The notes below the pieces were generated by a model. It had not been told where the DNA came from. It ran no database searches and saw only the letters and a program-made list of their open reading frames with translations. A stretch of 64,000 nt of DNA. It comes from Basidiobolus meristosporus CBS 931.73 (Eukaryota; Fungi; Basidiobolomycota). The position numbers were made by a program, and so were the translations under genes. Location: contig MCFE01000422.1 in NCBI GenBank assembly GCA_002104905.1, positions 14,049 to 78,048 on the forward strand, read 5' to 3'. This document shows, in pieces, positions 44,301 to 64,000 of the stretch; positions within the stretch are counted from its first letter, which is position 1, and each line of letters starts with the position of its first letter.

Positions 44301-45098
44301 CGCAAAGAAATGGATTGTTCTACTGTTTGAAGCACTTGCTGTATCGCCCAGCGCAATATTATTTGGCTAAATACTGGGATAGCCTGTAGGATGATTGGTT
44401 TTTCTTGCCAATGAAGAGTGACGATATCAGGTGTAACCCTCTGGGTCCCATGTGTAATGATGGAAAAATGTAGTAAAATAGGTTTAATGAGGTGTACTGT
44501 ACAGCGTAACACTGACAGTTCTGAAAAGTAGGTTGAGGGTTTCTATTCTCACTATATTATAATAAAAATGTGCACATTACGTTCCCTTGATCTTGTCGAG
44601 AAATAATCAACTATAGAAATGGGGTTTGTGTCTTTCATCCAATTATCTATTATCTGGCAGAAACGGGCTTTGGCTTGCGAAGTCTCCTTTGCAACAGTCG
44701 AATAGAAAACAATGCGTACTAATGGATATTCATGTTTCACTCTGTACCAAGGTATGCCAGGAGTTAATTAAATTCAATTCATGCCTGTTTATCCTATTTG
44801 GGCCATCCTCCGATGAATACAGCGGTCTTCCTCATTTCTTGGTCAATACTAAGTTTTAATTATTTTACAGGCTGTGGAAATTACAGGAAATACGATGCAC
44901 TTTGGCTAATAAGGGTTTTAAATAAATTCACATTATAAAGATTTCACGGTTCATAGAGAAAACGAATCTGAGAGACGCCAAAATTGGATATTCCGATAGC
45001 TTCTGCTGGATACTTCATCTTGAGATGACGAAGGAGGTATTACATTAGCTGGAAGACTGTCCCGGGTATTCCAGGGTGCTTTTGCATCACACTGCGGC

Positions 45099-51418: not shown

Positions 51419-54151
51419 ATGTCTTCCAAGTCTAAGAATGACATTATCCTTGTCCCTGAAGGTTACTCTATGGCCGACTGCATCCTGGGAGAGCTCCAAT
51501 GTTACTCTGTTCAGCCACTTGCATGGAGTGACATTGAGTTTCTACAGACAAGTTATGGGAAAAACACTGTGGCAGAAAAAAAGCCAGTTCGATGGTACGC
51601 TATAGTCTTTCATGCCTTGATACATCCTTTCAATATTCTTCTGGTCATCCTGGCCATTTTCTCCGGGGCTACTGGAGAGATCGATACCACCATCATCATG
51701 ATTGTGATGGTAGCATTGAGCGTTGTCCTTCGATCTGTACAGGAATTCAAGTCGGAGGTGGCCGCCCAGAGTTTGAAGGAAATGGTAAACAACAAATGTA
51801 CCGTTATCCGCAAATATGCCGCCCCCGATACTAGAGATCCTCTCCTTGAAGATTTACTCAAAATTGAGCGCGGTGAGGTTGCTGAGTACGAAATCCCGTT
51901 TGAGGATATCGTTCCTGGAGATTGCATCAAGTTAAGGGCTGGTGACCTGGTCCCGGCTGATTTGCAGTTGATCTTATCCAAGGATCTTTTCATCTCGCAA
52001 GCATCGTTGACTGGAGAGGCAATGCCAGTAGAGAAATCCTCATCCGGCTTTATCCTCCCAACAAACCCGAGCACCCCTGCTGACTCTGGCGAAGATATTT
52101 ATGGCTTGTCACGGCCCGATATGTGTTTCATGGGGACCAGTGTGGTCAGTGGAACTGCCATTGGTATAGTGAAAACCATTGGAACCAATACGGTGTTTGG
52201 AGTAATGGCGAAGCAGTTGATTGCACAGCGTCCAATTAATGCCTTTCAGAAAGGGATTCGAAGGATCAGTTACCTGTTTATTGGGATCATGCTCATTATG
52301 CTACCATTGGTCTTTGTCATATCAGGGATTACTAGCCATGATTGGTTGCAAGCAGCCCTCTTTGCTGCATCAGTTGCAGTTGGACTGACACCAGAAATGC
52401 TACCAATGATTGTCAATGCAAACCTGGCCCGAGGAGCATTAGTTCTGTCGAAGAAGAAGTGCATAGTCAAGAAGTTGGATTCCATTGTCAATATGGGCAG
52501 CATTGATGTGCTTTGTACTGATAAAACTGGCACATTGACGGAGGACAAGGTCTCGCTTGTGAAGCATCTAAATAGCAGTGGCCAACCCTCACTTTTCCCT
52601 CTAGAACTCGCATTCCTCAATTCAAACTTCCAAACCGGCCTGAAGAACTTGTTGGATTTTGCCGTCATCGAATACTACAATAAGAAGCCTAGTCTCTCAT
52701 TGGGCGAGTATTCCAAAGTGGATGAGATTCCGTTCGATTTCGTTCGACGCAAGATGTCCGTAGTGATTAGAGACCGGTCCAACATGGATCATCTGTTGAT
52801 TACGAAAGGTGCAGTTGATGAGATGCTGGCTTCATGCTCCCGGATCTTTGTGGGGAGCCAACCCAACTCTGACGAAGCAAGAGGTGGTATCACTTTACCC
52901 ACGGATAGTATCATTGACCTCACTGACGACCATCGGAGCGAGTTGCAGGCTTTGAATCATGAGCTAAACGATGATGGTCTTCGTGTGATAGCCGTTGCCT
53001 ACCGTGTTCTGGACAGGGATTATAAGGACCTCACTACTGCCCAAGAAACAAAGATGATATTTGCAGGATATATTGCCTTCCTCGATCCGCCCAAGCCAAG
53101 CACTGCCGTTGCGATCCGCGAGCTGCGTGAATATGGGGTGACAATTAAAGTTTTGACGGGGGATGCCGCTGCCGTTTGTCGCAAGGTTTGCCAAGAGATT
53201 CAACTTCCAGTCAACTCCATTGTGACCACAACTGATCTTGAGGATGTCAGCGAGGAGCGATTCACCGAAATTGTAGAAGAGGGAACAATTTTCGCAAAGC
53301 TCACACCGATTCAGAAGGCTCAGGTAATCCGAGCGCTAAAGAAGAAAGGTCATGTTGTGGGGTTCCTGGGTGATGGTATCAACGATGCACCTGCTTTGAG
53401 GGAGAGTGATTGTGGGATATCGGTTGATACCGGAACCGACATTGCAAAGGAATCCGCAGATATCATTTTGTTGGAGAAGGATTTGATGGTCTTGGTTGAC
53501 GGAGTAATCCGAGGACGTATCACTTACGGGAACACTATCAAGTACATCAAGATGGCTATTTCATCGAACTTTGGCAACGTGTTCAGCATGTTGGTGGCAT
53601 CTATCTGGCTTCCATTTCTACCAATGCTTCCGATCCAGGTGCTAGTGCAAAACCTACTCTATGATATTTCCCAGATTGCTATCCCATGGGACAGGATGGA
53701 TCAGGATTTCTTGAACACTCCGAAATCCTGGTCAGCCAAAGGGATTATTCGGTTCATGGCCTTCATTGGGCCTATTTCATCGATCTTTGATGTGACAACC
53801 TTCATTTACATGTGGTTTTATTTTGGTTGCACCACCCCGGATGATCAAGCCCTCTTCCAATCTGGTTGGTTTGTGATTGGCCTACTCACCCAAACCCTGA
53901 TTGTACACATGATTCGAACTCCGCTGATTCCATTCATTCAGAGTCGTGCCTCACTCCCACTACTGTTATCCACATTTGCTGTTATGGTCATTGGGTTCAT
54001 AATTCCATTTACTCCCCTGAAACAGGCACTTTCCATGGTAACGCTGCCAGGAATGTACTATCCTTACTTGTTTTCGGCACTACTTGCTTATTGCTTGCTC
54101 ACCCAACTCATCAAAGCTATATATATTTGGTACTTCCGGACTTGGTTGTAA
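51419..54151 (+). CDS. mgtA: Mg2+-transporting P-type ATPase, MgtA/MgtB-like (P3B), intronless
   Basis: LTGE, AVGLTPEMLPMIV, DKTGT, KGA, FLDPPK, TGD, GDGINDAPAL, TYGNTIKYIKMAISSNFGNVFS, LFQSGWFVIGLLTQTLIVHMIRT. Confidence 0.93.
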   Translation: MSSKSKNDIILVPEGYSMADCILGELQCYSVQPLAWSDIEFLQTSYGKNTVAEKKPVRWYAIVFHALIHPFNILLVILAIFSGATGEIDTTIIMIVMVALSVVLRSVQEFKSEVAAQSLKEMVNNKCTVIRKYAAPDTRDPLLEDLLKIERGEVAEYEIPFEDIVPGDCIKLRAGDLVPADLQLILSKDLFISQASLTGEAMPVEKSSSGFILPTNPSTPADSGEDIYGLSRPDMCFMGTSVVSGTAIGIVKTIGTNTVFGVMAKQLIAQRPINAFQKGIRRISYLFIGIMLIMLPLVFVISGITSHDWLQAALFAASVAVGLTPEMLPMIVNANLARGALVLSKKKCIVKKLDSIVNMGSIDVLCTDKTGTLTEDKVSLVKHLNSSGQPSLFPLELAFLNSNFQTGLKNLLDFAVIEYYNKKPSLSLGEYSKVDEIPFDFVRRKMSVVIRDRSNMDHLLITKGAVDEMLASCSRIFVGSQPNSDEARGGITLPTDSIIDLTDDHRSELQALNHELNDDGLRVIAVAYRVLDRDYKDLTTAQETKMIFAGYIAFLDPPKPSTAVAIRELREYGVTIKVLTGDAAAVCRKVCQEIQLPVNSIVTTTDLEDVSEERFTEIVEEGTIFAKLTPIQKAQVIRALKKKGHVVGFLGDGINDAPALRESDCGISVDTGTDIAKESADIILLEKDLMVLVDGVIRGRITYGNTIKYIKMAISSNFGNVFSMLVASIWLPFLPMLPIQVLVQNLLYDISQIAIPWDRMDQDFLNTPKSWSAKGIIRFMAFIGPISSIFDVTTFIYMWFYFGCTTPDDQALFQSGWFVIGLLTQTLIVHMIRTPLIPFIQSRASLPLLLSTFAVMVIGFIIPFTPLKQALSMVTLPGMYYPYLFSALLAYCLLTQLIKAIYIWYFRTWL

Positions 54152-54487
54152 TAATCAGTGAAAATAATCCCTGATAAAGTTGATTCGCTCCAATTGGTGG
54201 TCTTTTCAAGAGGTCTTGGGCTAATCTTTTGCTGGGAAATTGGTACGCTTAAACTATATGACTTAAAAACATGAAAACAAACGATCTTTATGGAAAAATG
54301 GATGTGCTAGATTACGGTTATCCAAAGTGTCAGGTAGCTGAATAGCCACCGGATTAATTCACTTCTTCAATTAATAACTCAGTAAAAAGGTATACTCATA
54401 TCCAATGAGCTTTTAGACTATACCAACATCTATGAAGCAAAGGGGCAATTGCCAATGCTTAGGTTTAAACATCTCTTAGGGGGTGAC

Positions 54488-54837
54488 TGTTGTAAGAGTC
54501 TTGGAGATATTGGAAGTAATTTGGGAGAACAAGTAGATTATGTGCTTTTCACTTAATGATTTATTCAATGTAAAAGTAGTATTTATACTTTTACACGATC
54601 TTGGCATAACAAATACATAGAATAGGTTTAGAAAGGTCCCAAGAGCATGTGTGCAAAGTCTGGGGCTGTTTAGACAACTTATCTAATTTTCATGCTCTGG
54701 GTACCTGATATTTTGTTGAAAATATTCTAAGTAAATCCCAACAAGGAATTTGGTCAGTATTCTCTCAGATTTGTAGGTAATGATCCAAGTGACCAAGTTA
54801 GGTGAATATTTTGATGGAATTGAAAACTTTCACAACA
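54488..54837 (-). mobile_element. Solo LTR of the copia family
   Basis: TGTTG..CAACA termini; colinear with the reverse complement of 55895-56243. Flanks GTGAC and CTCAC are not a clean TSD. Confidence 0.92.
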
Positions 54838-54871
54838 CTCACACTCAACTGAATGTTCATACTGACTAGTC

Positions 54872-54912
54872 TTGGGGGGGAGCCAGTCACAAACAAGTGA
54901 AATCCTTATATC
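54872..54912 (-). mobile_element. Degenerate 3'-end fragment of a non-LTR unit (unit 0)
   Basis: TTGGGGGGGAGCCAGTCACAAACAAGTGAAATCCTTATATCA aligns with the unit D end TTAGGGGGGGGGAGACAGTCACCAACAGGTGAAATCTTTATTTCA. Confidence 0.6.
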
Positions 54913-54916
54913 AGAG

Positions 54917-55894
54917 TTAGGGGGAATGATAATCACCAAAGGGTGAAATCTTTATTTAAATCATAAATAAAGAAGCCAAGTTTGAATATGAGTATCTGGA
55001 ATGCAGAAAGCCTACAGGTTAAACTTTGACTATACTGTTTCCCAAATATCCTCAATATCAAAGTCTAGAGGAGAATGTAGCAAGACTGCTTGTTCACTGC
55101 AGTATTTCTTAAGGAAGTTTGTGACTTGAGGTGAAGGAGAGTTTTTCAACAAGCTGGTAAATCTTTTGAGGAGTTCTTTTTCCAGAGAGAATGGTACACA
55201 GAGAGGAATTTCTAAATGATGTTTGAATGTATGCACTGAGAGCTCCCAATCCAGAATATTTTAGACTTCTACTGTTAATCTTCAACAATATTCTTGTCAA
55301 GAATAACTTCTAAGAGATCCCTGGCAATGTACTGAATGTCAATAATCTTAGGCATATGGACACATAGGCCTTTGAGGTAGTTTCTGTGTTCTGATATTGG
55401 GAAACAGCCAGAATTTCTGAAATAGCAAACAGCCCAGTTGGCTGTGGGAGGAGTATCAGGGCTGACAGGGAATCTTCTTCTGGCTTTAGAGTCCACTGAC
55501 TTAGTGGACTGTCTTGATGGAAGGGCAGCTGGTTTTGGATGAGCTTGAAGTGCTTGGAAGTAGGACTGAGTACAGGTAGCAGAAGTTCCTGGTTGTTGAG
55601 GGTTTTCAGATTGACTGGATGAAGAGCTGCTTGAGGAGTTGCAAGGTAAGGAAGAAGCTGAAAGTAAAGTGGAGAGTGCTGGGTGAAGTTCAGAATGAGT
55701 TTTGAAAAGAATTTGGAACCAAGATTTCAAGATTGCATTTTCAGCTTCAAGAAGAGAAATTCTTTGTTCAAGGTAAGAAGTCTGTAAAGAGTGAAAGTTG
55801 GATAAAAACATAAAAGAAGTAAATAGTAAGTAGAAAGGAGTAGTTGGGCTGGGAGGGTTGCAAAATAGGAAAGAAGAAAAAAGAGGGTTAGGGT
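54917..55894 (-). mobile_element. Unit A: about 1 kb non-autonomous non-LTR unit carrying only an ORF1-like gene
   Basis: Shared 3' module at 54917-54978; GGGTTAGGG at its 5' end; no RT sequence between the ORF and the 3' module. Confidence 0.7.
55030..55811 (-). pseudogene. LINE ORF1-like pseudogene (coiled coil plus putative RNA-binding domain)
   Basis: LEQRISLLEAENAILK heptads, low-complexity linker, ISEHRNYLKGLCVHMPKIIDIQYIARDLLEVIL. Continues after a frameshift/stop into the 55030-55236 frame. ORF1 identity is inferred. Confidence 0.55.
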
Positions 55895-56243
55895 TGTTGT
55901 AAAAATTTGTATTTCCACCTAAATATTCACCTAACTTAGTCACTTAGATCATCACCTTCAAATCCTAGAGAATACTGACCAAATTCCTTGTTGGGATTTA
56001 CTTGGAATATTTTCACCAAAATGCCAGGTACCCAGAACATGAAAATTCTCAAAGTTGTCCAAACAGCCCCAAACTTTGCACACATGTTCTTGGGACCTTC
56101 CTTAACCTATTCTACGTGTTTGTAGTGCCAAGACCATGTAAAAGTATAAATACTACTTTTACATTCAATAAATCATTAAGTGAAAACCACATAATCTACT
56201 TGTTTTCCAAATCACTTCCAATATCTCCAAGACTCTTACAACA

Positions 56244-56255
56244 GGTTATGAGCCC
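56244..56255 (+). other. Primer-binding site GGTTATGAGCCC
   Basis: Immediately follows the 5' LTR. Complementary to the anticodon stem-loop of initiator tRNA-Met, the half-tRNA priming type known for copia and Ty5. Confidence 0.8.
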
Positions 56256-56274
56256 TGAGCTGTCACTCTCTGCA

Positions 56275-59200
56275 ATGTCTACTACTGCTATTACTGGAAT
56301 TTTTCCCTCTGCTGAAAAGCTGGATGGATCTAACTACCAAGTGTAGAAGGTGAAGATGAAGATGCTGCTACAAGAAAGAGGCCTTTGGGATATTGTCATG
56401 GGAGAAGAATGCCACCCTAAAAACGTGGGAGAGGAAGCATTAAAGTACCAGAAGAAAGAACAAAGTGTCTTTAACTGCATTTGCCTTAATGTTAAGGACA
56501 AATTGCTAATTCAATGCTCAAGAGCAAAAACGGCAAAGAATGCCTGGAAAGCATTAGAAGACACCTACCAGTCATGTTCAGCTGCCAAGCAGATGTATCT
56601 GAGACAAAAATTCTTTACTACAAAGATGCTGCCAGGAGAAGAAATGAAAAATCTAATTAACAGAATTACCCTGCTGGTAGATGAGATGGAATATGTGGGT
56701 GTAACAACTACTGATGAGGATGTGATAGTTACCATCCTGAATAGCCTGACAGACAAGTTTCAGGGCCTTGTATCAGCCCTAGAGTCCAGAACTGAAGATT
56801 TGACATTAAATTACGTATATGGAAGGCTCCTGGATGAAGAATTAAAAAAATCAAGCGCCAATAAGAAGGAAGAAGAAAATGCTTTAATAAGCAATGATAA
56901 CCAACAAAGGAGGTACCCAAAACCCTACAAAGGCAACAGCAACCTATTTTGCAACTACTGCAAAAGGAAAGGATACACATCAGACCGGTGTCTCAAGCAG
57001 AGAGATTATCAGCAAAAGAAGCCTGAATATGGAAATGCTGCAACAACTGAAGATAGACTATTCATATCTGCACTAAATATGACCACAAACAAGGATTCTC
57101 AGATGTGGTATTTTGACTCTGGAGCTTCTCAACACTTTACACACCAAAAAGAACTTTTTACCCAATATCAAGAAATTCAAATTAAGAAGGTTTTTATGGG
57201 TGACGATAGAACACTTGATGCAGTGGGAGAAGGAACTATCCAAGTAAACCTTAGAAGCAGTGAAGGAAGCCATACACTGACCTTTAAAGAAGTACTCTAT
57301 GTACCAGAAATAGCCAAGAACCTACTATCTGTAAGCAAGGCCACAGCAGAAGGACTCAGTTTCAGTTTTGACAATTCTGGATGCAGGATCACTGATCAAA
57401 ATGGTGCCCATATTGCTTTGGGCATCAGAGATCAGAATCTATACAAGTTGACTTATATTCCATCATACTTGGAAGCCAATATAAGTAACTTAAATGAAGA
57501 AACACCAATGCTTTGGCACAGGAGATTTGGACACATCAATTTTGATTATTTGTGTAAAATGATCAAAGATCAGCTAGTTTCTGGAGTGAAAATTGATCCC
57601 CCAGCTAATTTGGAGCACTGTGAAGCCTGCATATATGGGAAACAAGCCAGACAACTGTTCAAGAGCTCTGGGTTAATCAAAACTAAGAAAAAATTAGATC
57701 TGATTCACCCAGATCTGTGTGGACCTATGCAAAATTTATCCTTAGGCGGGATGAAGTATTTAATCACTTTTATTAATGATTATACAAGATACACATGGGT
57801 CTACTTCATGGAGAGAAAGGAGGAAGCTCTGTCTAAGTTCAGGGAGTTTAAAGCCATGGTGGAGAGAGAAACTGGTGAAAAAATCAAGAAAATACGCTCT
57901 GACAATGGTGGAGAATATACCTCAAAACTCTTCATCCACTTCTGCAAAATTCATGGGATAAAGCAAGAGACTACTGTACCATACTCCCCATAGCAAAATG
58001 GAGTAGCAGAACAAGCTAACAGATCAATAATTGATATGGCAAGATCTATGATCCATGATCAAAAATTATCCTATGATTTTTGGGCAAAATCAGTTGCCAC
58101 TGCTGTATATCTTAAAAATAGGAGTTATAACAGAATACTTTGTGATTCTACTCCATTTGAAGCATGGTATGGATACCAACCAAGTGCAGAACATCTAAGA
58201 ATATTTGGGTGTACAGCATATGCCAAAAAACTGGCTGGAAATCAGTCAAAATTTGAGCCAAAAAGTGTAAAATGCATATTTTTGGGCTACTGCAATGAGA
58301 GTAAGACATACAGACTCTACATTACCAAAGCAAAGAAGCTGATCAAGTCCAGGGATGTGTTGTTTGATGAAAATTCAAAATTTTCACAAAAAATGACATC
58401 AGATGATGACAAAAATTTGATCTCAAGTCCACCAATTGTCAGGATTGAATCAGAGCAAAACAATGAAAATTTTTTCACTCCAGAGGACTCTACAACTGTG
58501 GTTCAGCCAGAATCAGTGCCCAGGAATATCCCAGAAGTGATCATTCCAATGTCAAATGCCCTGAGATCCAATCAGGCAAGAAATAGCCCAAATTACTATA
58601 TTAATGAGGGTACAAACTTAGCCTATGCCTATTCAGTCCATATTGATGAGCCCCAGACTGTAAAAGAGGCCCTAAATAGCCCTCAGACAAAGTTTTGGAG
58701 ATCTGCAATGACTGAGGAATATCAGGCACTGATGGAAAATCAAACTTGGGACTTAGTCAAATTACCAATCAACCAAAAATCAGTTGGATGCAGATGGGTC
58801 TTCAAGACAAAATACAAGGCTGATGGTACAATTGAAAGATACAAAGCAAGACTTGTAGCCAAAGGATACTCTCAAACAAAAGGACTTGACTATACTGAGA
58901 CCTTTGCACCGGTAGCCAAGTTTAATTCCATCAGATTAATATTGGCTATTGCAGCCAAATATAAGTTTTTTATTCATCAAATGGATGTAAAAACTGCATT
59001 TTTGAATAAAGAACTTGATGAGGACGTGTATATGGACCAGCCAGATGGGTTTGTTGACCAAGATAACCCCCATTTGGTCTGCAAGCTTAAAAAGTCACTA
59101 TATGGTCTCAAACAATCACTGAGAGCCTGGAATTGCAAGATAGATTCTTATTTGGAATCTTTGAGTTTCAAAAGAAGTAATGCTGACTATAGTATATACT

Positions 59201-60219
59201 ATAAGCCAGATAGAGCAAATCCAGTTCTATTAGCTCTATATGTGGATGATCTTATTATAGCCACCAATAACCTAGAAACATTAGAAGAGACTAAATCCAA
59301 CCTATCTAAGGAGTTCAAGATGTCCAATCTAGGAGAACTTAGTTACTACTTAGGGATTAAGTTCTCCATAGACAGAAGTACCCAGACTATTACCCTAAGC
59401 CAATCCAAGTATATTCAAGATATACTAAAGAAGTACAAAATGGAAGACTGTAAACTGGCAGCTACCCCAATGGAGACAAACCTTAACTTGGTCAAAACTC
59501 AACCAAATCAAGAGAGCTTGGTGCCATCTGAAAGCCCTGACTTTCCTTATTAATCTATGGTTGGCATTCTGATGTATATCATGCTTGGAACACGTCCAGA
59601 TATCTCATATTCAGTGGGAGTTGTCAGCCAACATAATCACAATTATGGATCTGATCATATTGCAGCAGTTAAGCGGATTTTTAGATACCTAAAAGAAACT
59701 GCTGATATCTGCTTAAGATACACTTATAAGGATTCAGAGCAGGATCTTGTGGGATACTCTGATGCTGATTGGGGATGAAATTTGGAAGACAGATGATCCA
59801 CCACAGGATACACCTTTCTTTACTGTAAAGGAGCAATTTCACGGAATTCAAGAAAGCAACTAACCGTAGCACTTTCTACTACAGAGGCAGAGTATATGGT
59901 AGCCTGTGAAGCTACAAAAGAAGCAATGTGGTCAAGAAAGCTCCTTACAGATTTAGACCTATGTCAAAAAACGCCTATTACTTTATTTCAAGATAATCAA
60001 GGATGTATACAATTAGGTAGAAATTCAACTTTTCATGCTAGAACCAAGCACATAGATATTAGACATCATTTCACAAGTGAAGCTATAGAGAATAACTTAG
60101 TTAGCGTAGTTTACTGTCCTACAGATGAAATGATTGCAGACATATTTACCAAACCATTAGCTAGAGACAAGTTTGAATATCTTAGGTCAAAGTTAGGACT
60201 AGTCAGTATGAACATTTAG
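56275..60219 (+). pseudogene. Copia gag-pol polyprotein in one frame with 5 premature stops
   Basis: KLDGSNY, WYFDSGASQH, GAG-pre-integrase LWHRRFGH, RSDNGGEY, YKARLVAKG, HQMDVKTAFL, LYVDD, RTKHIDIRHHF. Stops at 56344, 57991, 59551, 59776 and 59794. Confidence 0.96.
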
Positions 60220-60220
60220 C

Positions 60221-60230
60221 TGAGTGGGAG
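60221..60230 (+). other. Polypurine tract TGAGTGGGAG
   Basis: Purine-rich tract abutting the 3' LTR start at 60231. Confidence 0.75.
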
Positions 60231-60581
60231 TGTTGTAAAAATTTGTATTTCCACCTAAATATTCACCTAACTTAGTCACTTAGATCATCACCTTCAAATC
60301 CTAGAGAATACTGACCAAATTCCTTGTTGGGATTTACTTGGAATATTTTCACCAAAATGCCAGGTACCCAGAACATGAAAACTAACCCTAAGTTGTCCAA
60401 ACAGCCCCAAGCTTTGCACACATGTTCTTGGGACCTTCCTTAACCTATTCTACGTGTTTGTAATGCCAAGACCATGTAAAAGTATAAATACTACTTTTAC
60501 ATTCAATAAATCATTAAGTGAAAACCACATAATCTACTTGTTCTCTAAATCACTTCCAATATCTCCAAGACTCTTACAACA

Positions 60582-60807
60582 AGGGTTAGGGGGAGGAAAG
60601 TCACCAAGTGGTGAAATCTTTATTAACTTATATCTAGTATTTAAAGAAGCCAAGTTAATCTGAAGTTATTCCTAGAAAGCTAGGCCTGAGAGATATCTTC
60701 CTGGTAAGCCAGGTCTGAGAGTTGAGAAGCTGAGTGATATTGTATTTCCTAGTTAGATAGGTCTGAGAGAGATTTTCTGGAAAGTAAGGTCTGAATAGTG
60801 AGAATCT
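60582..60807 (-). mobile_element. Unit B: short 5'-truncated non-LTR unit
   Basis: Shared 3' module (GGGTTAGGGGG..TCACCAAGTGGTGAAATCTTTATT..AAAGAAGCCA) plus about 150 bp of internally repetitive body. Confidence 0.65.
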
Positions 60808-61567
60808 GGGTTAGGGGGAGGGAAAGTCAATATGATGGTGAAATCTTTATTTGAGTCAGGAACTAATCAAAGTACAAATAAAGAAGCCAATCAAGTAGTC
60901 TAGAACCTCTCTAATAAGTAATCTAACTTATGTTTTGTTTCATCTCAAATGTTCATTTCAATAAAGTAAAGCTCATCATGGGCAAATATAAAATTCAAGG
61001 GTTCTAGAGTAAGTACAATTGCATATGTTTCTGAGCAATATAATCCAAGACTGAAACCCAGCCTGGGATTAGATGTAGTAGGAAAGGTGTGTGGACTTGT
61101 AAGTAGCTCTGCCTCATAGATCTTAGATGGTCCTGAGCCAGTAGTCTTGGTTTCTCAGCTTTTCGAAGTTTTGAAGCAAGCTCTGCTACTACAGCAGAGC
61201 CAACCAGGGTGTGCCAGCAAGAAGATTTCAGGGAGGAGTTAGATTGAAGCCATTGTTTGATGGAGGGGTTATGTGATTTCTGAAGTTTGACTAGGAAGGA
61301 AGCATGGAGATAGACCATTTGGATTTGATATGTGTAGAACCCAAAGGCTCCATTAGTTGCATGGATATAGGGAGATATTGGAAGATAAGGTACTAAGGAT
61401 CTGATACACTGATGGAGAAATTTATCCAGGTGGTGAAGTTCTCTGGAGGTGAGGGGTATAATGTGGAGACCAAATTCAAGTACTGGCAGTACATACTTGT
61501 TGTACATCAACATTTAAAACTTGGCCAATTTCACTCCATTAGAAAATCTAGTATCCTAACTGATTTT
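60808..61567 (-). mobile_element. Unit C: 5'-truncated LINE with the C-terminal part of an ORF2 (61004-61513)
   Basis: Shared 3' module. Peptide aligns with the unit D C-terminus: VLPVLEFGL/VFPVLEFGL, CIRSLVPYLP/CITSLVPHLP, GAFGF, SCWHTL/SCWRTI, HTPF. Confidence 0.85.
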
Positions 61568-61849
61568 CCCTAACCCAAACATAACTAATCCCTGTTATGA
61601 TTTATTTTATCACTTCTCAGAATCTGTTTTTAGCTGTCACACTTGATCAATATTCAAGTGGTCATTACATCCTCAACTGATCTGCTAAGCCTTTACAAAG
61701 GATTAGTCATCTGAGATCCATCCAACCACTTAGTAGTTGCTAAGACATCAGCTGATTAATGATGCAATTTCTCATTTATCTTATGCACCTATCAACACCC
61801 AAACTGAAATAGATTTCAGTTAGTCCAGTCTCTTGGCACTTACTAATTC

Positions 61850-64000
61850 TTAGGGTTAGGGGGGGGGAGACAGTCACCAACAGGTGAAATCTTTATTTCA
61901 GTTGAAACAAAGAAGCCAGAGCTACTGTTGTAGCTTTGATACAAGAGTGTGTAGCTGAGGGGAATTTGTAGGTAAGTTAATAAGAAGTGATGATAGTTCT
62001 TCAGTGCTCAAGACACTGTTCAGTGGGAAGGGGGGTAGCAAGAGAGGTAAGAATGACTTGTGAACAACATTAATGAGGGGAATGTGATAAGGATTGATAT
62101 TCATCATAAAGGGAGTGTGCTGCTGCAGATATTGCTGCCAAAGGTCTGTCAAGTACTTCAGGTAGGCCAGCTTGGGTTTTTCTGACTGAAGAATATAGTG
62201 AGCAAACTTCTTGACTTCAGGATCTCCGAGTATAGTTCTCCAGCAGGAGCCAGGTGTTGTGTGGTGTGTTCTCTTCCAGGCCTTAATCAGTGGGTTGTTG
62301 CAGTTGTGAAGTCTGAGGTATAATCTGGTTCTAAGGTAGAGAAGTCTGATCTTATAGGGCATAAACCCAAAAGCACCAAGAATAGCATGTCTGTAGGGGC
62401 ATTCAGGCAAATGAGGCACCAAGGAGGTAATGCACCATACTGCAAGCTTGTCAAGCTTAGTGCAGTCTCTAGAAGTAAGAGAGAGAAGTGGTAAGCCAAA
62501 TTCCAGGACAGGGAAGACAAACTGCTTGAGTAGAAGGAGGCAGCTGGGAGCTGAAGTTGTAGGAGGAGTAACAGCCAGTAGCTTGTGGAGTGCCTGTCTT
62601 GCCAGGATAATTCTCTTCTTCAGGTGTGCTCCAGAGTCTAGTCCAGTAGGAAGGAAAGGAAAGCCAAGATATGTAGCAGAAACCTGAGCAGGTAGAGTGG
62701 AGTTCTCCAAGTTGATGGGAGAGCCCAAAGGTACTGTCTTTGCAATGGAAAGCTGGAGATTATTCTTCTGCAGATACTGGTGGATGGTCTGGGAGTCTTG
62801 TTGCACATTGGAGGAGGATATTCTGATGTCATCAGCAAAGAGAGTAACCAGGCAGTCAGCTGAGAGTCTTGGGAAATCATTCAGGAAGATGGCAAACAGT
62901 ATAGGACCAAGCACAGAGCCTTGAACCACTCCATTAGGAACTGAGAACACAGCTGATTGCTCACTTGGGTGCAGAATTCTTGCTTGTGGATCCAGAAACA
63001 GAGACCTGACAAGGAGGGTGAGAGAGGTACTGGAGAAGCATTGCAACTTGGACCAAAGCAGATTTCTGTCAACTGAATCAAAGGCCTTAGTTATATCAAA
63101 CAGAACAGAGGGATACTTGCACTGGAGAGAGTGATCTTGGCTAAGTATGACTGCATATTCCAAGGAGAGGCCAGGAACAAAGCCAAACTGTGCAGGATGA
63201 AACTTGAGGGAGTCAGAGTAGAGCTCCTGAGCAAGAAGAAGCTCAAACACCTTTCTGCAGGTGGGCAGCAGAGATATTGGCCTGTAGGAGCTAGGATCCA
63301 GGTGCTTTCCTTTACCCTTGTACAGTGGCAGAACATTTGCAAAGGACCATTCCTCAGGAGTAGAAAGCTGGGCTGAGCATTGCTGAAACAGTGGAAGCAG
63401 AAGTGCAGACATGGCCTTGGTACTAGTCTTCAGAAGCTCATAGGAGATTGTGTCCACACCTGGAGCAGTAGAGTTGGGAAGCCTCTTCAGCACATTATGG
63501 ATTCTCCTTTGATCAAGTGCAAGTGGGATGGGCAGAGTCTTGAAGTCAGGATGAAAGCTAGGAGTTGAGTACTGCTTTGTAGAGAAGAAGATGTTAGCCA
63601 GCTGTTCTGTTGAAGGTAACTTCCTGGAAGAGGGCCTCATTGCCCTGTAGAGTCTTGATACTGTTCTTGTTATAGAGTTGGAAGATTGCAGAGGCAAAGA
63701 ACTCATAATATGATCCCAGAGCTGAGTATGCAGAGTGTGGTGAATTGCCTTGGAGTGGTGTATTGCTGTCAGGAGGAGTTTCTCTGTTTTTGGGTTAGGG
63801 AAGCTCAGGTAGCTTTGTTGCAGGGCTGAAACAATGGATTCCCATTTTCTTGAGGTAACAGCAGTAGTCTTGCATGGCAGTGAGAGGGAGGCAGACACCA
63901 GAATCAGATGCTTCACAAAGAGCCAGGCAAAGTTGAGATCATCTGGCAGAGAAAGTAGCAAACTGGCAAGCTTCAAGTAGTTCCCAAAGTCTTTCTTCTG
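61850..64000 (-). mobile_element. Unit D: LINE-type non-LTR retrotransposon with intact ORF2, 5' part outside window
   Basis: Begins TTAGGGTTAGGGGGGGGG plus the shared 3' module; 3' UTR of about 70 bp; ORF is open to the window edge. Confidence 0.93.
61922..64000 (-). CDS. Non-LTR reverse transcriptase (ORF2), partial
   Basis: APGVDTI, YRPISLL, QFGF, FDITKAFDSV, GVVQGSVLGPILF, FADD, YLGF. No stops from 64000 to 61922. Confidence 0.95.
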   Translation of the reverse strand, partial: QKKDFGNYLKLASLLLSLPDDLNFAWLFVKHLILVSASLSLPCKTTAVTSRKWESIVSALQQSYLSFPNPKTEKLLLTAIHHSKAIHHTLHTQLWDHIMSSLPLQSSNSITRTVSRLYRAMRPSSRKLPSTEQLANIFFSTKQYSTPSFHPDFKTLPIPLALDQRRIHNVLKRLPNSTAPGVDTISYELLKTSTKAMSALLLPLFQQCSAQLSTPEEWSFANVLPLYKGKGKHLDPSSYRPISLLPTCRKVFELLLAQELYSDSLKFHPAQFGFVPGLSLEYAVILSQDHSLQCKYPSVLFDITKAFDSVDRNLLWSKLQCFSSTSLTLLVRSLFLDPQARILHPSEQSAVFSVPNGVVQGSVLGPILFAIFLNDFPRLSADCLVTLFADDIRISSSNVQQDSQTIHQYLQKNNLQLSIAKTVPLGSPINLENSTLPAQVSATYLGFPFLPTGLDSGAHLKKRIILARQALHKLLAVTPPTTSAPSCLLLLKQFVFPVLEFGLPLLSLTSRDCTKLDKLAVWCITSLVPHLPECPYRHAILGAFGFMPYKIRLLYLRTRLYLRLHNCNNPLIKAWKRTHHTTPGSCWRTILGDPEVKKFAHYILQSEKPKLAYLKYLTDLWQQYLQQHTPFMMNINPYHIPLINVVHKSFLPLLLPPFPLNSVLSTEELSSLLINLPTNSPQLHTLVSKLQQ

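Follow-up and report, generated by a model that had tools for sequence, protein, structure and literature searches.

Probable addition of telomeric non-LTR retroelements to eroded chromosome ends in the fungus Basidiobolus meristosporus

The window that we analysed is a stretch of 64,000 nt from Basidiobolus meristosporus CBS 931.73 (GCA_002104905.1, MCFE01000422.1, positions 14,049 to 78,048, forward strand). Its right edge is the contig end. The last ordinary gene, which is context and lies outside the system described here, encodes a P-type cation ATPase (51419–54151, + strand; intact 910-aa ORF; E1-E2_ATPase 5.9e-34, Cation_ATPase_C 1e-19) and ends where a first-pass annotation of this DNA had ordinary genes stop. 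Positions 54872–64000 are occupied by five retroelement units, all 5′-truncated, all on the minus strand and arranged head-to-tail. Reading the sequence confirmed the junctions and the 3′ modules of the four clear units and of the degenerate fifth, as annotated. The units are of four kinds: two LINE lineages with an APE-type endonuclease and a reverse transcriptase (RT), an ORF1-only element, a piece of a short non-coding element (here termed a SINE) and a 45-bp remnant. The stack is interrupted by one copia element and one unrelated repeat.

The stack begins where a copia remnant in reverse orientation ends (54487–54871, minus strand; an LTR and the last internal bases, by comparison with the copia element at 55895–60581). 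The remnant is 82–84% identical to LTR copies elsewhere in the window. Since it is cut at 54871, the stack was probably seeded on an end that had broken or eroded inside a copia element. The joint at 54871/54872 holds only TT and G7 (TTGGGGGGG, 54872–54880, + strand) and no full telomere repeat; it leads into the diverged module of unit 1, the degenerate 45-bp 3′ end of a family-A-like LINE (54872–54916, minus strand). Unit 2 (54917–55889, minus strand; junction GTTAGGGGG at 54916–54924, + strand) is an ORF1-only (Gag-only) telomeric element of family D, 88–91% identical to other copies. It is 5′-truncated and decayed, and its ORF1-like frame (55015–55811) has two stops and a frame break.

The junction of units 2 and 3 reads GGGTTAGGGT (55886–55894), copia, AGGGTTAGGGGG (60582–60593). 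The copia LTR retrotransposon (55895–60581, + strand; Retrotran_gag_2, rve, RVT_2) sits inside the inter-unit telomere repeat and is flanked by a 5-bp target duplication, AGGGT, the left copy of which (55890–55894) lies within the (TTAGGG)2 junction. Hence, the junction before insertion was GGGTTAGGGTTAGGGGG. The LTRs are 97.4% identical and the gag-integrase and RT frames contain stops. This element is a later invader and not a component of the system.

Unit 3 (60582–60807, minus strand; 19 matches at 90–92%) is the 3′-terminal ~222 bp of family C, the "SINE", and starts with the right copy of AGGGT, followed by TTAGGGGG and the module. Unit 4 (60808–61497, minus strand; junction GGGTTAGGGGG at 60808–60818, + strand) is the 3′-terminal 690 bp of a family B LINE, 93% identical to other copies. 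The last 169 codons of its ORF2 remain open (61004–61513, the C-terminal part), with 40% amino acid identity to residues 718–885 of the family-A ORF2 and 62% to P0003. The annotation had drawn this unit as far as 61849. The 690 bp are indeed LINE; the remainder (61498–61849), which separates unit 4 from the next telomere repeat, is 352 bp of a dispersed repeat unrelated to it that is found in both orientations in other subtelomeres (L016, L008, L004, L028, L006). It most likely represents what is left of a further invader that end erosion later trimmed. Unit 5 (61850–64000, minus strand; RVT_1 1.6e-25; junction TTAGGGTTAGGGGGGGGG at 61850–61867, + strand) is a family A LINE, 99.3% identical to a full-length copy, and runs from TTAGGGTTAG plus G9 through the 3′ module into ORF2 (RT and part of the linker). 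The contig end cuts it 2139 bp from its own 3′ end; the assembly of MCFE01000422.1 stops inside this unit and the telomere of the contig is not assembled. The units are not all LINEs: units 1, 4 and 5 are, and unit 2 (family D) and unit 3 (family C) are of other kinds.

On the + strand the units share a start of (G)GGTTA and a G-run, the telomere repeat running into G's that had been described before, and then the 3′ module. A 14-mer, GTGAAATCTTTATT, stands 20–27 nt after each junction. Its four exact matches in the 64 kb lie on the + strand, within 54943–61897, and the degenerate unit has a copy with two mismatches at 54897. The window contains 6 copies of TTAGGGGG where 1.4 are expected, and 0 of 100 shuffles reach 6. 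Plain TTAGGG is at chance level in the window (32 against 29 expected), so the signal is the junction plus the module and not the hexamer. No A or T runs were found at the 3′ ends of the units, which agrees with the earlier report of missing poly(A) tails. The predicted module folds (z-scores −2.5 to −5.7) comprise two stem-loops, UCUUUAUUU...AAAUAAAGA and UCACC-loop-GGUGA, and a predicted RNA-sense tail of single-stranded pyrimidines that ends in C4–10 UAA(CCC). The module is invariant across families whose ORF2 proteins share only 40% identity.

The system is a consortium of at least three LINE lineages, two ORF1-only families (D and E) and one short non-coding element. The LINEs consist of ORF1, an in-frame UGA and ORF2, with an N-terminal APE-type endonuclease and an RT, after which no further Pfam domain follows; their 5′ region contains tandem repeats of variable copy number. 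Among solved structures the RT is closest to L1 ORF2p; library sequences from outside its own lineage reach no more than 41% identity, and that over the RT alone. Family A is the youngest LINE family in the system, with an uninterrupted 922-codon ORF2 in 16 of 30 loci (99% identity), which points to recent activity. Families D and E encode an ORF1-like protein only and carry the same 3′ module as the LINEs. The family D frame is 31% identical to family-A ORF1 (E 2e-12), and one copy (L052) has an intact 266-aa ORF that ends ~70 nt before the 3′ end, and no ORF2. Family C is ~527 bp long and non-coding. In a full-length copy (L012), GGTTCAAATCC looks B-box-like and TAGCCTTGTGG A-box-like by eye; ARAGORN and Rfam call no tRNA. 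Rfam detected no ribozyme in 26 kb of stacks. A relative with 80% amino acid identity occurs on a metagenome contig from a different sample; it shares the module together with CCCCCCTAACCC, and downstream of it lies a family-D-like unit.

Of 947 first-look candidates genome-wide, 40 were scored; these are long copies of family A, 99% identical, and 37 are "+". All 30 "+" copies on contigs of known size, which reach 267 kb, are found no more than 8.6 kb from the right contig end, their 3′ end facing inward, as expected from the proposal that copies are terminal and polarised. The exception is a long copy in contig C781, which is inverted and at least 10 kb from both contig ends. Because 99%-identical repeats break assemblies, lying at the end of a contig counts for little by itself. 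However, 8 of 12 sampled right ends carry a terminal (TTAGGG)n tract of 192–233 bp, joined directly to a 5′-truncated family-A copy. The first repeat at these capped ends is often irregular, as in de novo healing. Counts of (TTAGGG)5 are 7145 forward and 73 reverse, so the telomere is on the right, where it had been placed at first pass. On the question of whether TERT is retained, the genome has a match to its RNA-binding domain above cut-off (PF12009, Telomerase_RBD).

With end-confined copies (C781 excepted), uniform orientation in head-to-tail arrays, variable 5′ truncation and telomere-repeat junctions, these elements belong to the functional class of telomere-specific non-LTR retrotransposons. 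We favour, with some reserve, the explanation that positions 54872–64000 form the inner portion of a stack at a chromosome end, assembled by several telomere-dedicated non-LTR retroelements that act as a consortium and prime on nearly naked ends. The ORF2 protein would bind the shared 3′ module, and the C-run/UAACCC tail would pair with a G-strand 3′ end stripped of nearly all repeats, either an eroded or broken chromosome end or the end of a freshly made cDNA. The RT would copy the RNA outward, and telomerase would then re-cap the new end. ORF1-only and non-coding elements would be mobilised in trans. Because the very tip is still telomerase repeat, the elements would build a layer beneath the cap.

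The case for nearly naked primer ends comes from 71 distinct junctions, left after removal of duplicates. TTA precedes a G-run of 4–10 in 64 of them; full repeats upstream number zero in 45, one in 15 and two in four, and the host repeat is wholly absent in 22 (~30%). Terminal tracts have ~33 repeats, and random nicking in them would be expected to leave ~15 on average. Tracts of 0–2 repeats, together with the junctions that have none, therefore argue against random nicking in normal telomeres and favour nearly naked ends.

A less probable reading is that the same consortium depends on its endonuclease, as TRAS does: the APE domain would nick the TTAGGG strand of telomeric duplexes at TTA^GGG, also in the 1–3-repeat joints of existing stacks, and the nick would prime reverse transcription from the C-run. 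The start exactly after TTA in those 64 junctions fits such a nick. The domain itself is a weak Exo_endo_phos_2 match in family A; in P0003 the match clears the cut-off. Its APE fold is confidently predicted (pLDDT 87), with the TRAS1 endonuclease (1wdu) as the top Foldseek match and APE1 and the L1 endonuclease scoring nearly as high. N8, Y93, D126, N128, D171, S200, D201 and H202 are kept, and two lineages that are no more than 40% identical both conserve catalytic residues. This conservation suggests that the domain is used, and a pure free-end mechanism needs none. On the other hand, the metal-binding Glu of (Q)ET, kept in 18 of 20 aligning distant relatives, is Asp in this lineage, and the loop from GDxN to the next Asp is shortened. 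Insertion at inner joints would also fit the loose age order of stacks such as C573, where copies are not simply ordered with the youngest outermost. Yet no unit is ever split by another, whereas the copia split is clean and has a target duplication; the 22 junctions above offer no repeat for recognition, and tracts proximal to units never exceed two full repeats.

It is quite improbable that the stacks arose mostly by recombination (unequal exchange or break-induced replication between subtelomeres), with retrotransposition only long ago. The units out of age order would fit this history, as would a joint between full-length family C and family A, CTTGG/TTA/G-run, that recurs in at least seven loci, and the telomere-bearing contigs, many of which look like variants of each other (e.g., C21 and C22). 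However, truncation points and outer flanks vary between loci, with eight different truncation points among terminal copies, and the 99% identity of family A copies, most with intact ORFs, implies recent copying through RNA. The reading as an ordinary dispersed LINE, with its contig-end position an assembly artefact and its TTAGGG-like bases chance or a weak target preference, is helped by the scoring of only 40 of 947 candidates, the contig breaks common in repeats and the lack of plain TTAGGG enrichment in the window, but it is close to refuted by the single orientation relative to the contig end in 30 of 30 copies, real terminal tracts of ~200 bp at eight ends, a module with TTAGGGGG far above chance, and the fact that each sampled unit adjoins another unit or a short telomere tract.

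Reverse transcription primed on nearly naked ends can be compared with several known systems. TRAS and SART of Bombyx mori likewise have two ORFs and an N-terminal APE-type endonuclease with an RT, are restricted to telomere repeats and coexist with a telomerase gene; TRAS also shares the polarity, with the G-rich strand as primer. In TRAS and SART the 3′ end is poly(A), which must be long for initiation to be accurate (PMC7265360), whereas the tail here is a C-run and UAACCC with no A-runs. Their insertion sites lie deep in long tracts, at a single defined bond, and three repeats are the minimum, in contrast to the 0–2-repeat tracts here, and the ORF1 of our system differs in lacking C-terminal CCHC knuckles. 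TRAS and SART belong to the R1 clade, and the likeness here is one of architecture and endonuclease fold.

HeT-A, TART and TAHRE of Drosophila, which belong to the Jockey clade, also form head-to-tail terminal arrays with 3′ ends inward and variable 5′ truncation, and attach to ends without telomerase repeats. HeT-A is Gag-only, like families D and E, and relies on RT-encoding partners. In contrast to Drosophila, which has lost telomerase and has oligo(A) joints, we find the TERT domain match, ~200 bp of terminal (TTAGGG)n, joints of C-run and UAACCC and a short non-coding partner.

MoTeR (Magnaporthe), FoTeR (Fusarium) and Cnl1 (Cryptococcus) are likewise fungal, lie in subtelomeric arrays among short TTAGGG-type tracts, have 5′ tandem repeats of variable copy number and are associated with dynamic chromosome ends (PMC12857005; bioRxiv 10.1101/2021.08.11.455996). 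They are of the CRE clade, with a single ORF and a restriction-enzyme-like (REL) endonuclease C-terminal to the RT (motif CCHC...RHD...E...PD; PMC12857005), unlike the ORF1 and the ORF2 with N-terminal APE-type domain described here. In the Penelope-like elements Athena and Coprina, stretches of reverse-complement telomeric repeat at the 3′ end serve for attachment to G-rich overhangs that are exposed (PMC8557442), as the first-pass annotation proposed for the elements here; in DNA such a repeat stands at their 3′ end too. However, Athena/Coprina have no endonuclease, a PLE/TERT-like RT and hammerhead ribozymes, as opposed to a LINE-type RT, an APE-type domain and no ribozyme in the 26 kb scanned.

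Non-insect APE-type LINEs in telomeric repeats are known from Chlorella (Zepp) and anole (Tx1-1_ACar; PMC10088271). Both are L1-like, as is the RT here by its nearest solved structure. Judged from their descriptions, each of them is a single family, whereas the consortium here comprises several families, Gag-only and non-coding partners among them. Work of Morrish and colleagues in 2007 reportedly found endonuclease-independent L1 insertion at dysfunctional telomeres. There, too, a LINE RT is primed on a deprotected chromosome end with the same polarity; that is a rare laboratory event of a poly(A) element in repair-deficient cells, whereas here we see what looks like a dedicated, tail-adapted natural system. 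A literature search found no publication on a Basidiobolus telomere-tailed LINE system. Judged from its sequence, it would be new as a fungal telomeric LINE system with an APE-type domain, since the known fungal ones carry a REL endonuclease.

The elements of Basidiobolus thus resemble the telomere retrotransposons of fly and silkworm, yet are built from different parts, and they seem to work alongside telomerase, being copied onto chromosome ends that have worn down. More tentatively, two reverse transcriptases may share the upkeep of these ends: wherever repeats have been lost or a chromosome has broken, LINE RNPs whose tail resembles a telomerase template would extend the naked 3′ end nick-free, and telomerase would re-cap it. 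If this is true, telomerase telomeres and the retrotransposon telomeres of the Drosophila type would have a living intermediate in this system.

The retroelements at the right end of the window belong to what we consider a real and well-supported consortium of telomere-dedicated elements: a LINE, Gag-only elements and a short non-coding element, all with tails complementary to the telomere repeat. The window corresponds to C727:14049–78048. Every retroelement unit from 54872 to the window end, where the contig also stops, lies on the minus strand. Read on the plus strand, a unit opens with a short stretch resembling the telomere repeat, which leads into a G-run, and 20–27 nt further on follows the 14-mer GTGAAATCTTTATT, an invariant part of a 3'-terminal module common to all families. 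This 14-mer has four exact matches in the 64 kb, on a single strand and all within the last 9 kb. The window contains six occurrences of TTAGGGGG (1.4 expected); plain TTAGGG occurs there at chance level, without enrichment, and every unit of the stack lacks a poly(A) tail. A one-mismatch copy of the 14-mer in the gene-rich part of the window (44934–44947, minus strand) is probably due to chance, since 12.6 matches with up to three mismatches are expected.

The last ordinary gene, an intact P-type ATPase ORF, ends at 54151. The stack itself is founded on the remnant of a reverse-oriented copia element (54487–54871), which is cut off at 54871. The outer LTR end of this remnant adjoins TCTTAGGGGGTGAC at 54474–54486, which could be the stump of a still older unit invaded by the reverse copia, or chance. 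At the joint with the remnant there is only TT and G7, leading into a decayed, family-A-like 3' end of 45 bp (54872–54916). Next come a family D unit (54917–55889) and a second copia element (55895–60581; 55890–60586 including flanks), which sits exactly in the (TTAGGG)2 sequence that joins two units and has an AGGGT target duplication, LTRs of 97.4% identity and broken frames. Further outward lie the 3'-terminal ~222 bp of family C, a non-coding element (60582–60807), and the last 690 bp of the LINE family B (60808–61497), in which 169 ORF2 codons are open (62% identical to the related LINE protein P0003 and 40% to family A). An unrelated repeat of 352 bp (61498–61849) separates this truncated LINE from the next telomere repeat; it recurs in other subtelomeres, reversed at loci L016, L008 and L006 and forward at L004 and L028. 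The outermost unit belongs to family A (61850–64000), is 99.3% identical to a full-length copy and is cut by the contig end. The units described in the first-pass annotation are therefore real, but they are not uniform: they form a mixed population of elements, and one "unit" is a composite.

From inside to outside the identities in the window are about 82%, 90.5%, 90.9%, 91.3% and 99.0%, so here they rise outward. We do not claim "youngest outermost" as a general order, as there are exceptions within families elsewhere (e.g., 99.2, 97.8 and 98.7 for family A in contig C573). Overall, 41 pairs are concordant with this order and 21 discordant, a count that is confounded by family.

Scoring covered 40 out of 947 first-look candidates in the genome; this gives a minimum of 40 copies of family A at 99% identity, of which 37 are on the plus strand. 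For 30 plus-strand copies on contigs of known size (up to 267 kb), the matched 2.15 kb ends 0–8.6 kb from the right contig end. Mapping the copies had been proposed as a check on end enrichment and polarity, and for the scored copies of family A both are borne out, with exceptions on three contigs. On two of these (C1312 and C217) the copies are on the minus strand and fit a telomere on the left. On the third (C781:57146–59290), a near-full family A copy has the opposite orientation to all the rest. Both contig ends are at least 10 kb away from it, and older LINE fragments follow on its 3' side; an internal stack, the fusion or inversion of an end, or a misjoin could account for it.

In the whole genome (TTAGGG)5 occurs 7145 times in forward and 73 times in reverse orientation; hence, in nearly all telomere-bearing contigs the G-strand end is on the right, which is where the first-pass annotation had placed the telomere of this stack. 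CCCTAA is almost never found at left ends. Terminal (TTAGGG)n, which the same annotation had suggested looking for to the right of this stack, is present in the genome as 192–233 bp of repeat at 8 of 12 sampled right contig ends. Seven of these eight tracts join a family A copy directly, at seven different truncation positions, and the eighth joint (L031, on C482) could not be assigned a position on the reference copy of family A. De novo capping would be expected to leave what is seen at terminal joints: the first repeat is often irregular, and one joint has an additional A-run. Whether the genome retains TERT had also been raised: a Telomerase_RBD match above cut-off on C935 suggests that it does, and the consortium thus apparently coexists with telomerase in this fungus.

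At about 29 overlapping matches per ~200-bp tract, the repeat count implies ~250 telomeric ends among 1366 contigs. Many small chromosomes could explain this, as could many variants of identical ends left unmerged, or a convention of the assembly. The many telomeres also prompted the idea of a ciliate-like macronuclear genome, which we reject: the in-frame stops of the copia element at 55895–60581 fall at sites where copia relatives presumably carry Gln or Arg, and they look like ordinary mutation (CAG, CAA or CGA to stop), not like a variant genetic code. A figure of ~250 telomere tracts fits old microscopy reports on Basidiobolus, in which small chromosomes number from about 60 up to many hundreds (PMC3281927).

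Full-length family A is ~4.6 kb long (contig C573; loci L028 and L052) and comprises a 5' leader of variable length, an ORF1 of 511 aa, a single in-frame UGA and an ORF2 of 922 aa that is uninterrupted at 16 of 30 loci. The actual 5' terminus of the element is CTCTTTAAATTAGTCAA. An internal (CCCTAA)2 and a length-variable stretch with GGAT-type repeats (139 vs. 238 bp) lie in the leader (L052:2269–2424, L002:495–750), which may derive from an earlier unit that was captured and now acts as promoter. In ORF1 a Cys4 motif at the N-terminus is accompanied by a coiled coil and, at the C-terminus, by a conserved domain; searches with ORF1 against PDB and Pfam returned coiled-coil noise only. Both ORFs are in one frame, with one UGA between them (L028:4290–4360, L007, L017 and, on a metagenome contig, L055:1440–1475). 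Because a second lineage, with only 40% protein identity, has exactly the same context (UCU GCC UGA CUA), and because an 80%-identical relative keeps the in-frame UGA (there followed by CUU), we infer a candidate programmed read-through site, by which ORF2 would be made.

Families D and E, 42–45% identical to each other, code for an ORF1-like protein only. It has 266 aa and 30% identity to the coiled coil and C-terminal domain of the family A ORF1 (E 1e-17), and with its stop codon about 70–145 nt from the 3' end there is no space for an ORF2. The 5' region of family D (L052:5988–6394) is made of tandem ~118-bp repeats with CCCTAACCC in each, an array reminiscent of MoTeR and FoTeR, in which 5' tandem repeats differ in copy number. 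Family C is non-coding and ~527 bp long. By eye, B-box-like and A-box-like motifs can be seen in its head; ARAGORN and Rfam made no tRNA call in this family, and an Rfam scan of the stacks gave no credible match to ribozymes or tRNA.

ORF2 matches RVT_1 (2.6e-25) and, weakly, Exo_endo_phos_2. Among solved structures human L1 ORF2p is the closest to it (6e-13), with R2 at only 0.09, and the protein atlas yielded nothing but generic APE+RT clusters. A phmmer search of PDB with the endonuclease alone gave no match. The N-terminal 245 residues are predicted to adopt an APE fold (pLDDT 87, pTM 0.84), a model that required a 26-row alignment, as prediction from the single sequence reached pLDDT 40. 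The TRAS1 endonuclease (1wdu) ranks first among structures, with APE1 and the L1 endonuclease nearly equal. In the alignment N8, Y93, G125-D126-x-N128, D171 and S200-D201-H202 are retained, and the loop after GDxN is shortened. Where the ETW/QET motif has its Glu, both lineages here have Asp (Asp33). Of the 20 more distant relatives alignable at this position, 18 have the Glu.

All families share the order of their 3' ends: GGCTTCTTTATTT, a variable stretch, AAATAAAGATTTCACC, a loop, GGTGAC, TTTCC(C)T, C4-10 and TAA(CCC). Every representative folds in the same way (z-scores of −2.5 to −5.7): two hairpins come first, and the pyrimidine tail after them is single-stranded. The RNAalifold consensus agrees. 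Covariation (one compensatory pair and one G-U) is weak and adds little, as the stems are otherwise nearly invariant. Our main argument is that the module is conserved across families whose proteins are 40% identical; it is therefore probably the recognition site of the RT, held in common with the non-autonomous partners.

How the elements attach to chromosome ends can be judged from 71 distinct 3' junctions (three duplicates removed). TTA directly precedes a G-run of 4–10 in 64 of them. Full TTAGGG units further upstream number zero in 45 junctions, one in 15 and two in 4. The host repeat is wholly absent from 22 of the 71, which are joined via TTA or less to a truncated element, to a full-length family C 5' end or to other DNA. 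Terminal tracts have ~33 repeats; those under units never have more than two. In long tracts SART1 nicks at a random repeat (PMC7265360), which would here leave ~15 repeats under each unit. Because of these short tracts, and because the window stack starts on a copia element cut in two and not on a telomere tract, we favor priming at free ends, which we hold to be probable on balance. Endonuclease-dependent targeting seems less likely to us. Against priming at free ends stand the conservation of the endonuclease, which may be aimed at the joints with 1–3 repeats, and an age order that in other stacks is not strictly outward.

Under free-end priming, transcripts of families A, B, D and C would end in ...CCCCCCUAA(CCC)n, a tail able to pair with the telomere. 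The ORF2 protein, together with the 3' module RNA, would extend a single-stranded ...TTAGGGTTA-3' end. Priming would take place on ends stripped of nearly all repeats, or the RT would jump onto the tail of the next RNA, and the UAA(CCC) at the joints would be supplied by the element RNA. One joint is recurrent, with differing outer flanks: the full-length 5' end of family C (…CTTGG) is followed by TTA and the family A G-run (L012, L016, L018, L020, L029, L002 and L052). It is possible that this joint arose through repeated template jumps, or that a read-through transcript of the LINE and family C was copied as a unit.

Library searches returned only about five close proteins (49–97% identity), the others having at most 41% identity in the RT alone. 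The 80%-identical relative of family A lies on a 4.6-kb metagenome contig from a separate sample (ENA ERZ23872178, NODE_15981; L055), with ORF1, endonuclease and RT in the same order as in family A. An identical 3' module is followed there by CCCCCCTAACCC and, about 190 bp downstream, by a decayed family-D-like 3' end, so that this contig is also head-to-tail. A second contig, from another run (SRR13100619; L056), stops at ...CTCCCCCCCTA. The system is therefore not confined to one assembly, and the presence of the 80%-identical relative in other public samples points to a related organism with the same system.

Systems of this kind are already known, and the variant found here is undescribed in the literature searched, where a full-text search on Basidiobolus telomere retrotransposons returned only unrelated work. 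The known fungal telomeric LINEs (MoTeR, FoTeR and Cnl1) fall into a single CRE-related clade, in which the RT is followed by a restriction-enzyme-like endonuclease (PMC12857005); Cnl1 builds massive subtelomeric arrays (bioRxiv 10.1101/2021.08.11.455996). Telomeric LINEs of the APE type are TRAS/SART (R1), Zepp and Tx1-1_ACar (L1-like) and the Drosophila trio (Jockey) (PMC10088271), and other target-specific APE elements belong mainly to the Tx1 and R1 clades (PMC4640811). In Athena and Coprina, endonuclease-less Penelope-like elements, a 3' reverse-complement telomere repeat for attachment to the G-overhang is a hallmark (PMC8557442). The Basidiobolus system shares an APE-type LINE with the silkworm, a telomere-complement tail in place of poly(A) with the Penelope-like elements and a Gag-only partner with Drosophila HeT-A. 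It fails to show one defining feature of each known group, yet operates like a blend of them.

Few lineages are known to have telomere-dedicated retroelements, and each is instructive about how chromosome ends are maintained. Here, an APE-type LINE, a telomere-complement tail, a Gag-only partner and a short non-coding partner, which elsewhere are found separately, are combined in an early-diverging fungus that has apparently kept telomerase. The priming step of the consortium is one that we infer; pairing of the tail with the overhang would be a case of convergent evolution in an unrelated RT lineage. With many copies intact and 99% identical, the system is young and apparently active. Hence, whether retroelements and telomerase share end maintenance, or exchange it, would be testable in a culturable organism.
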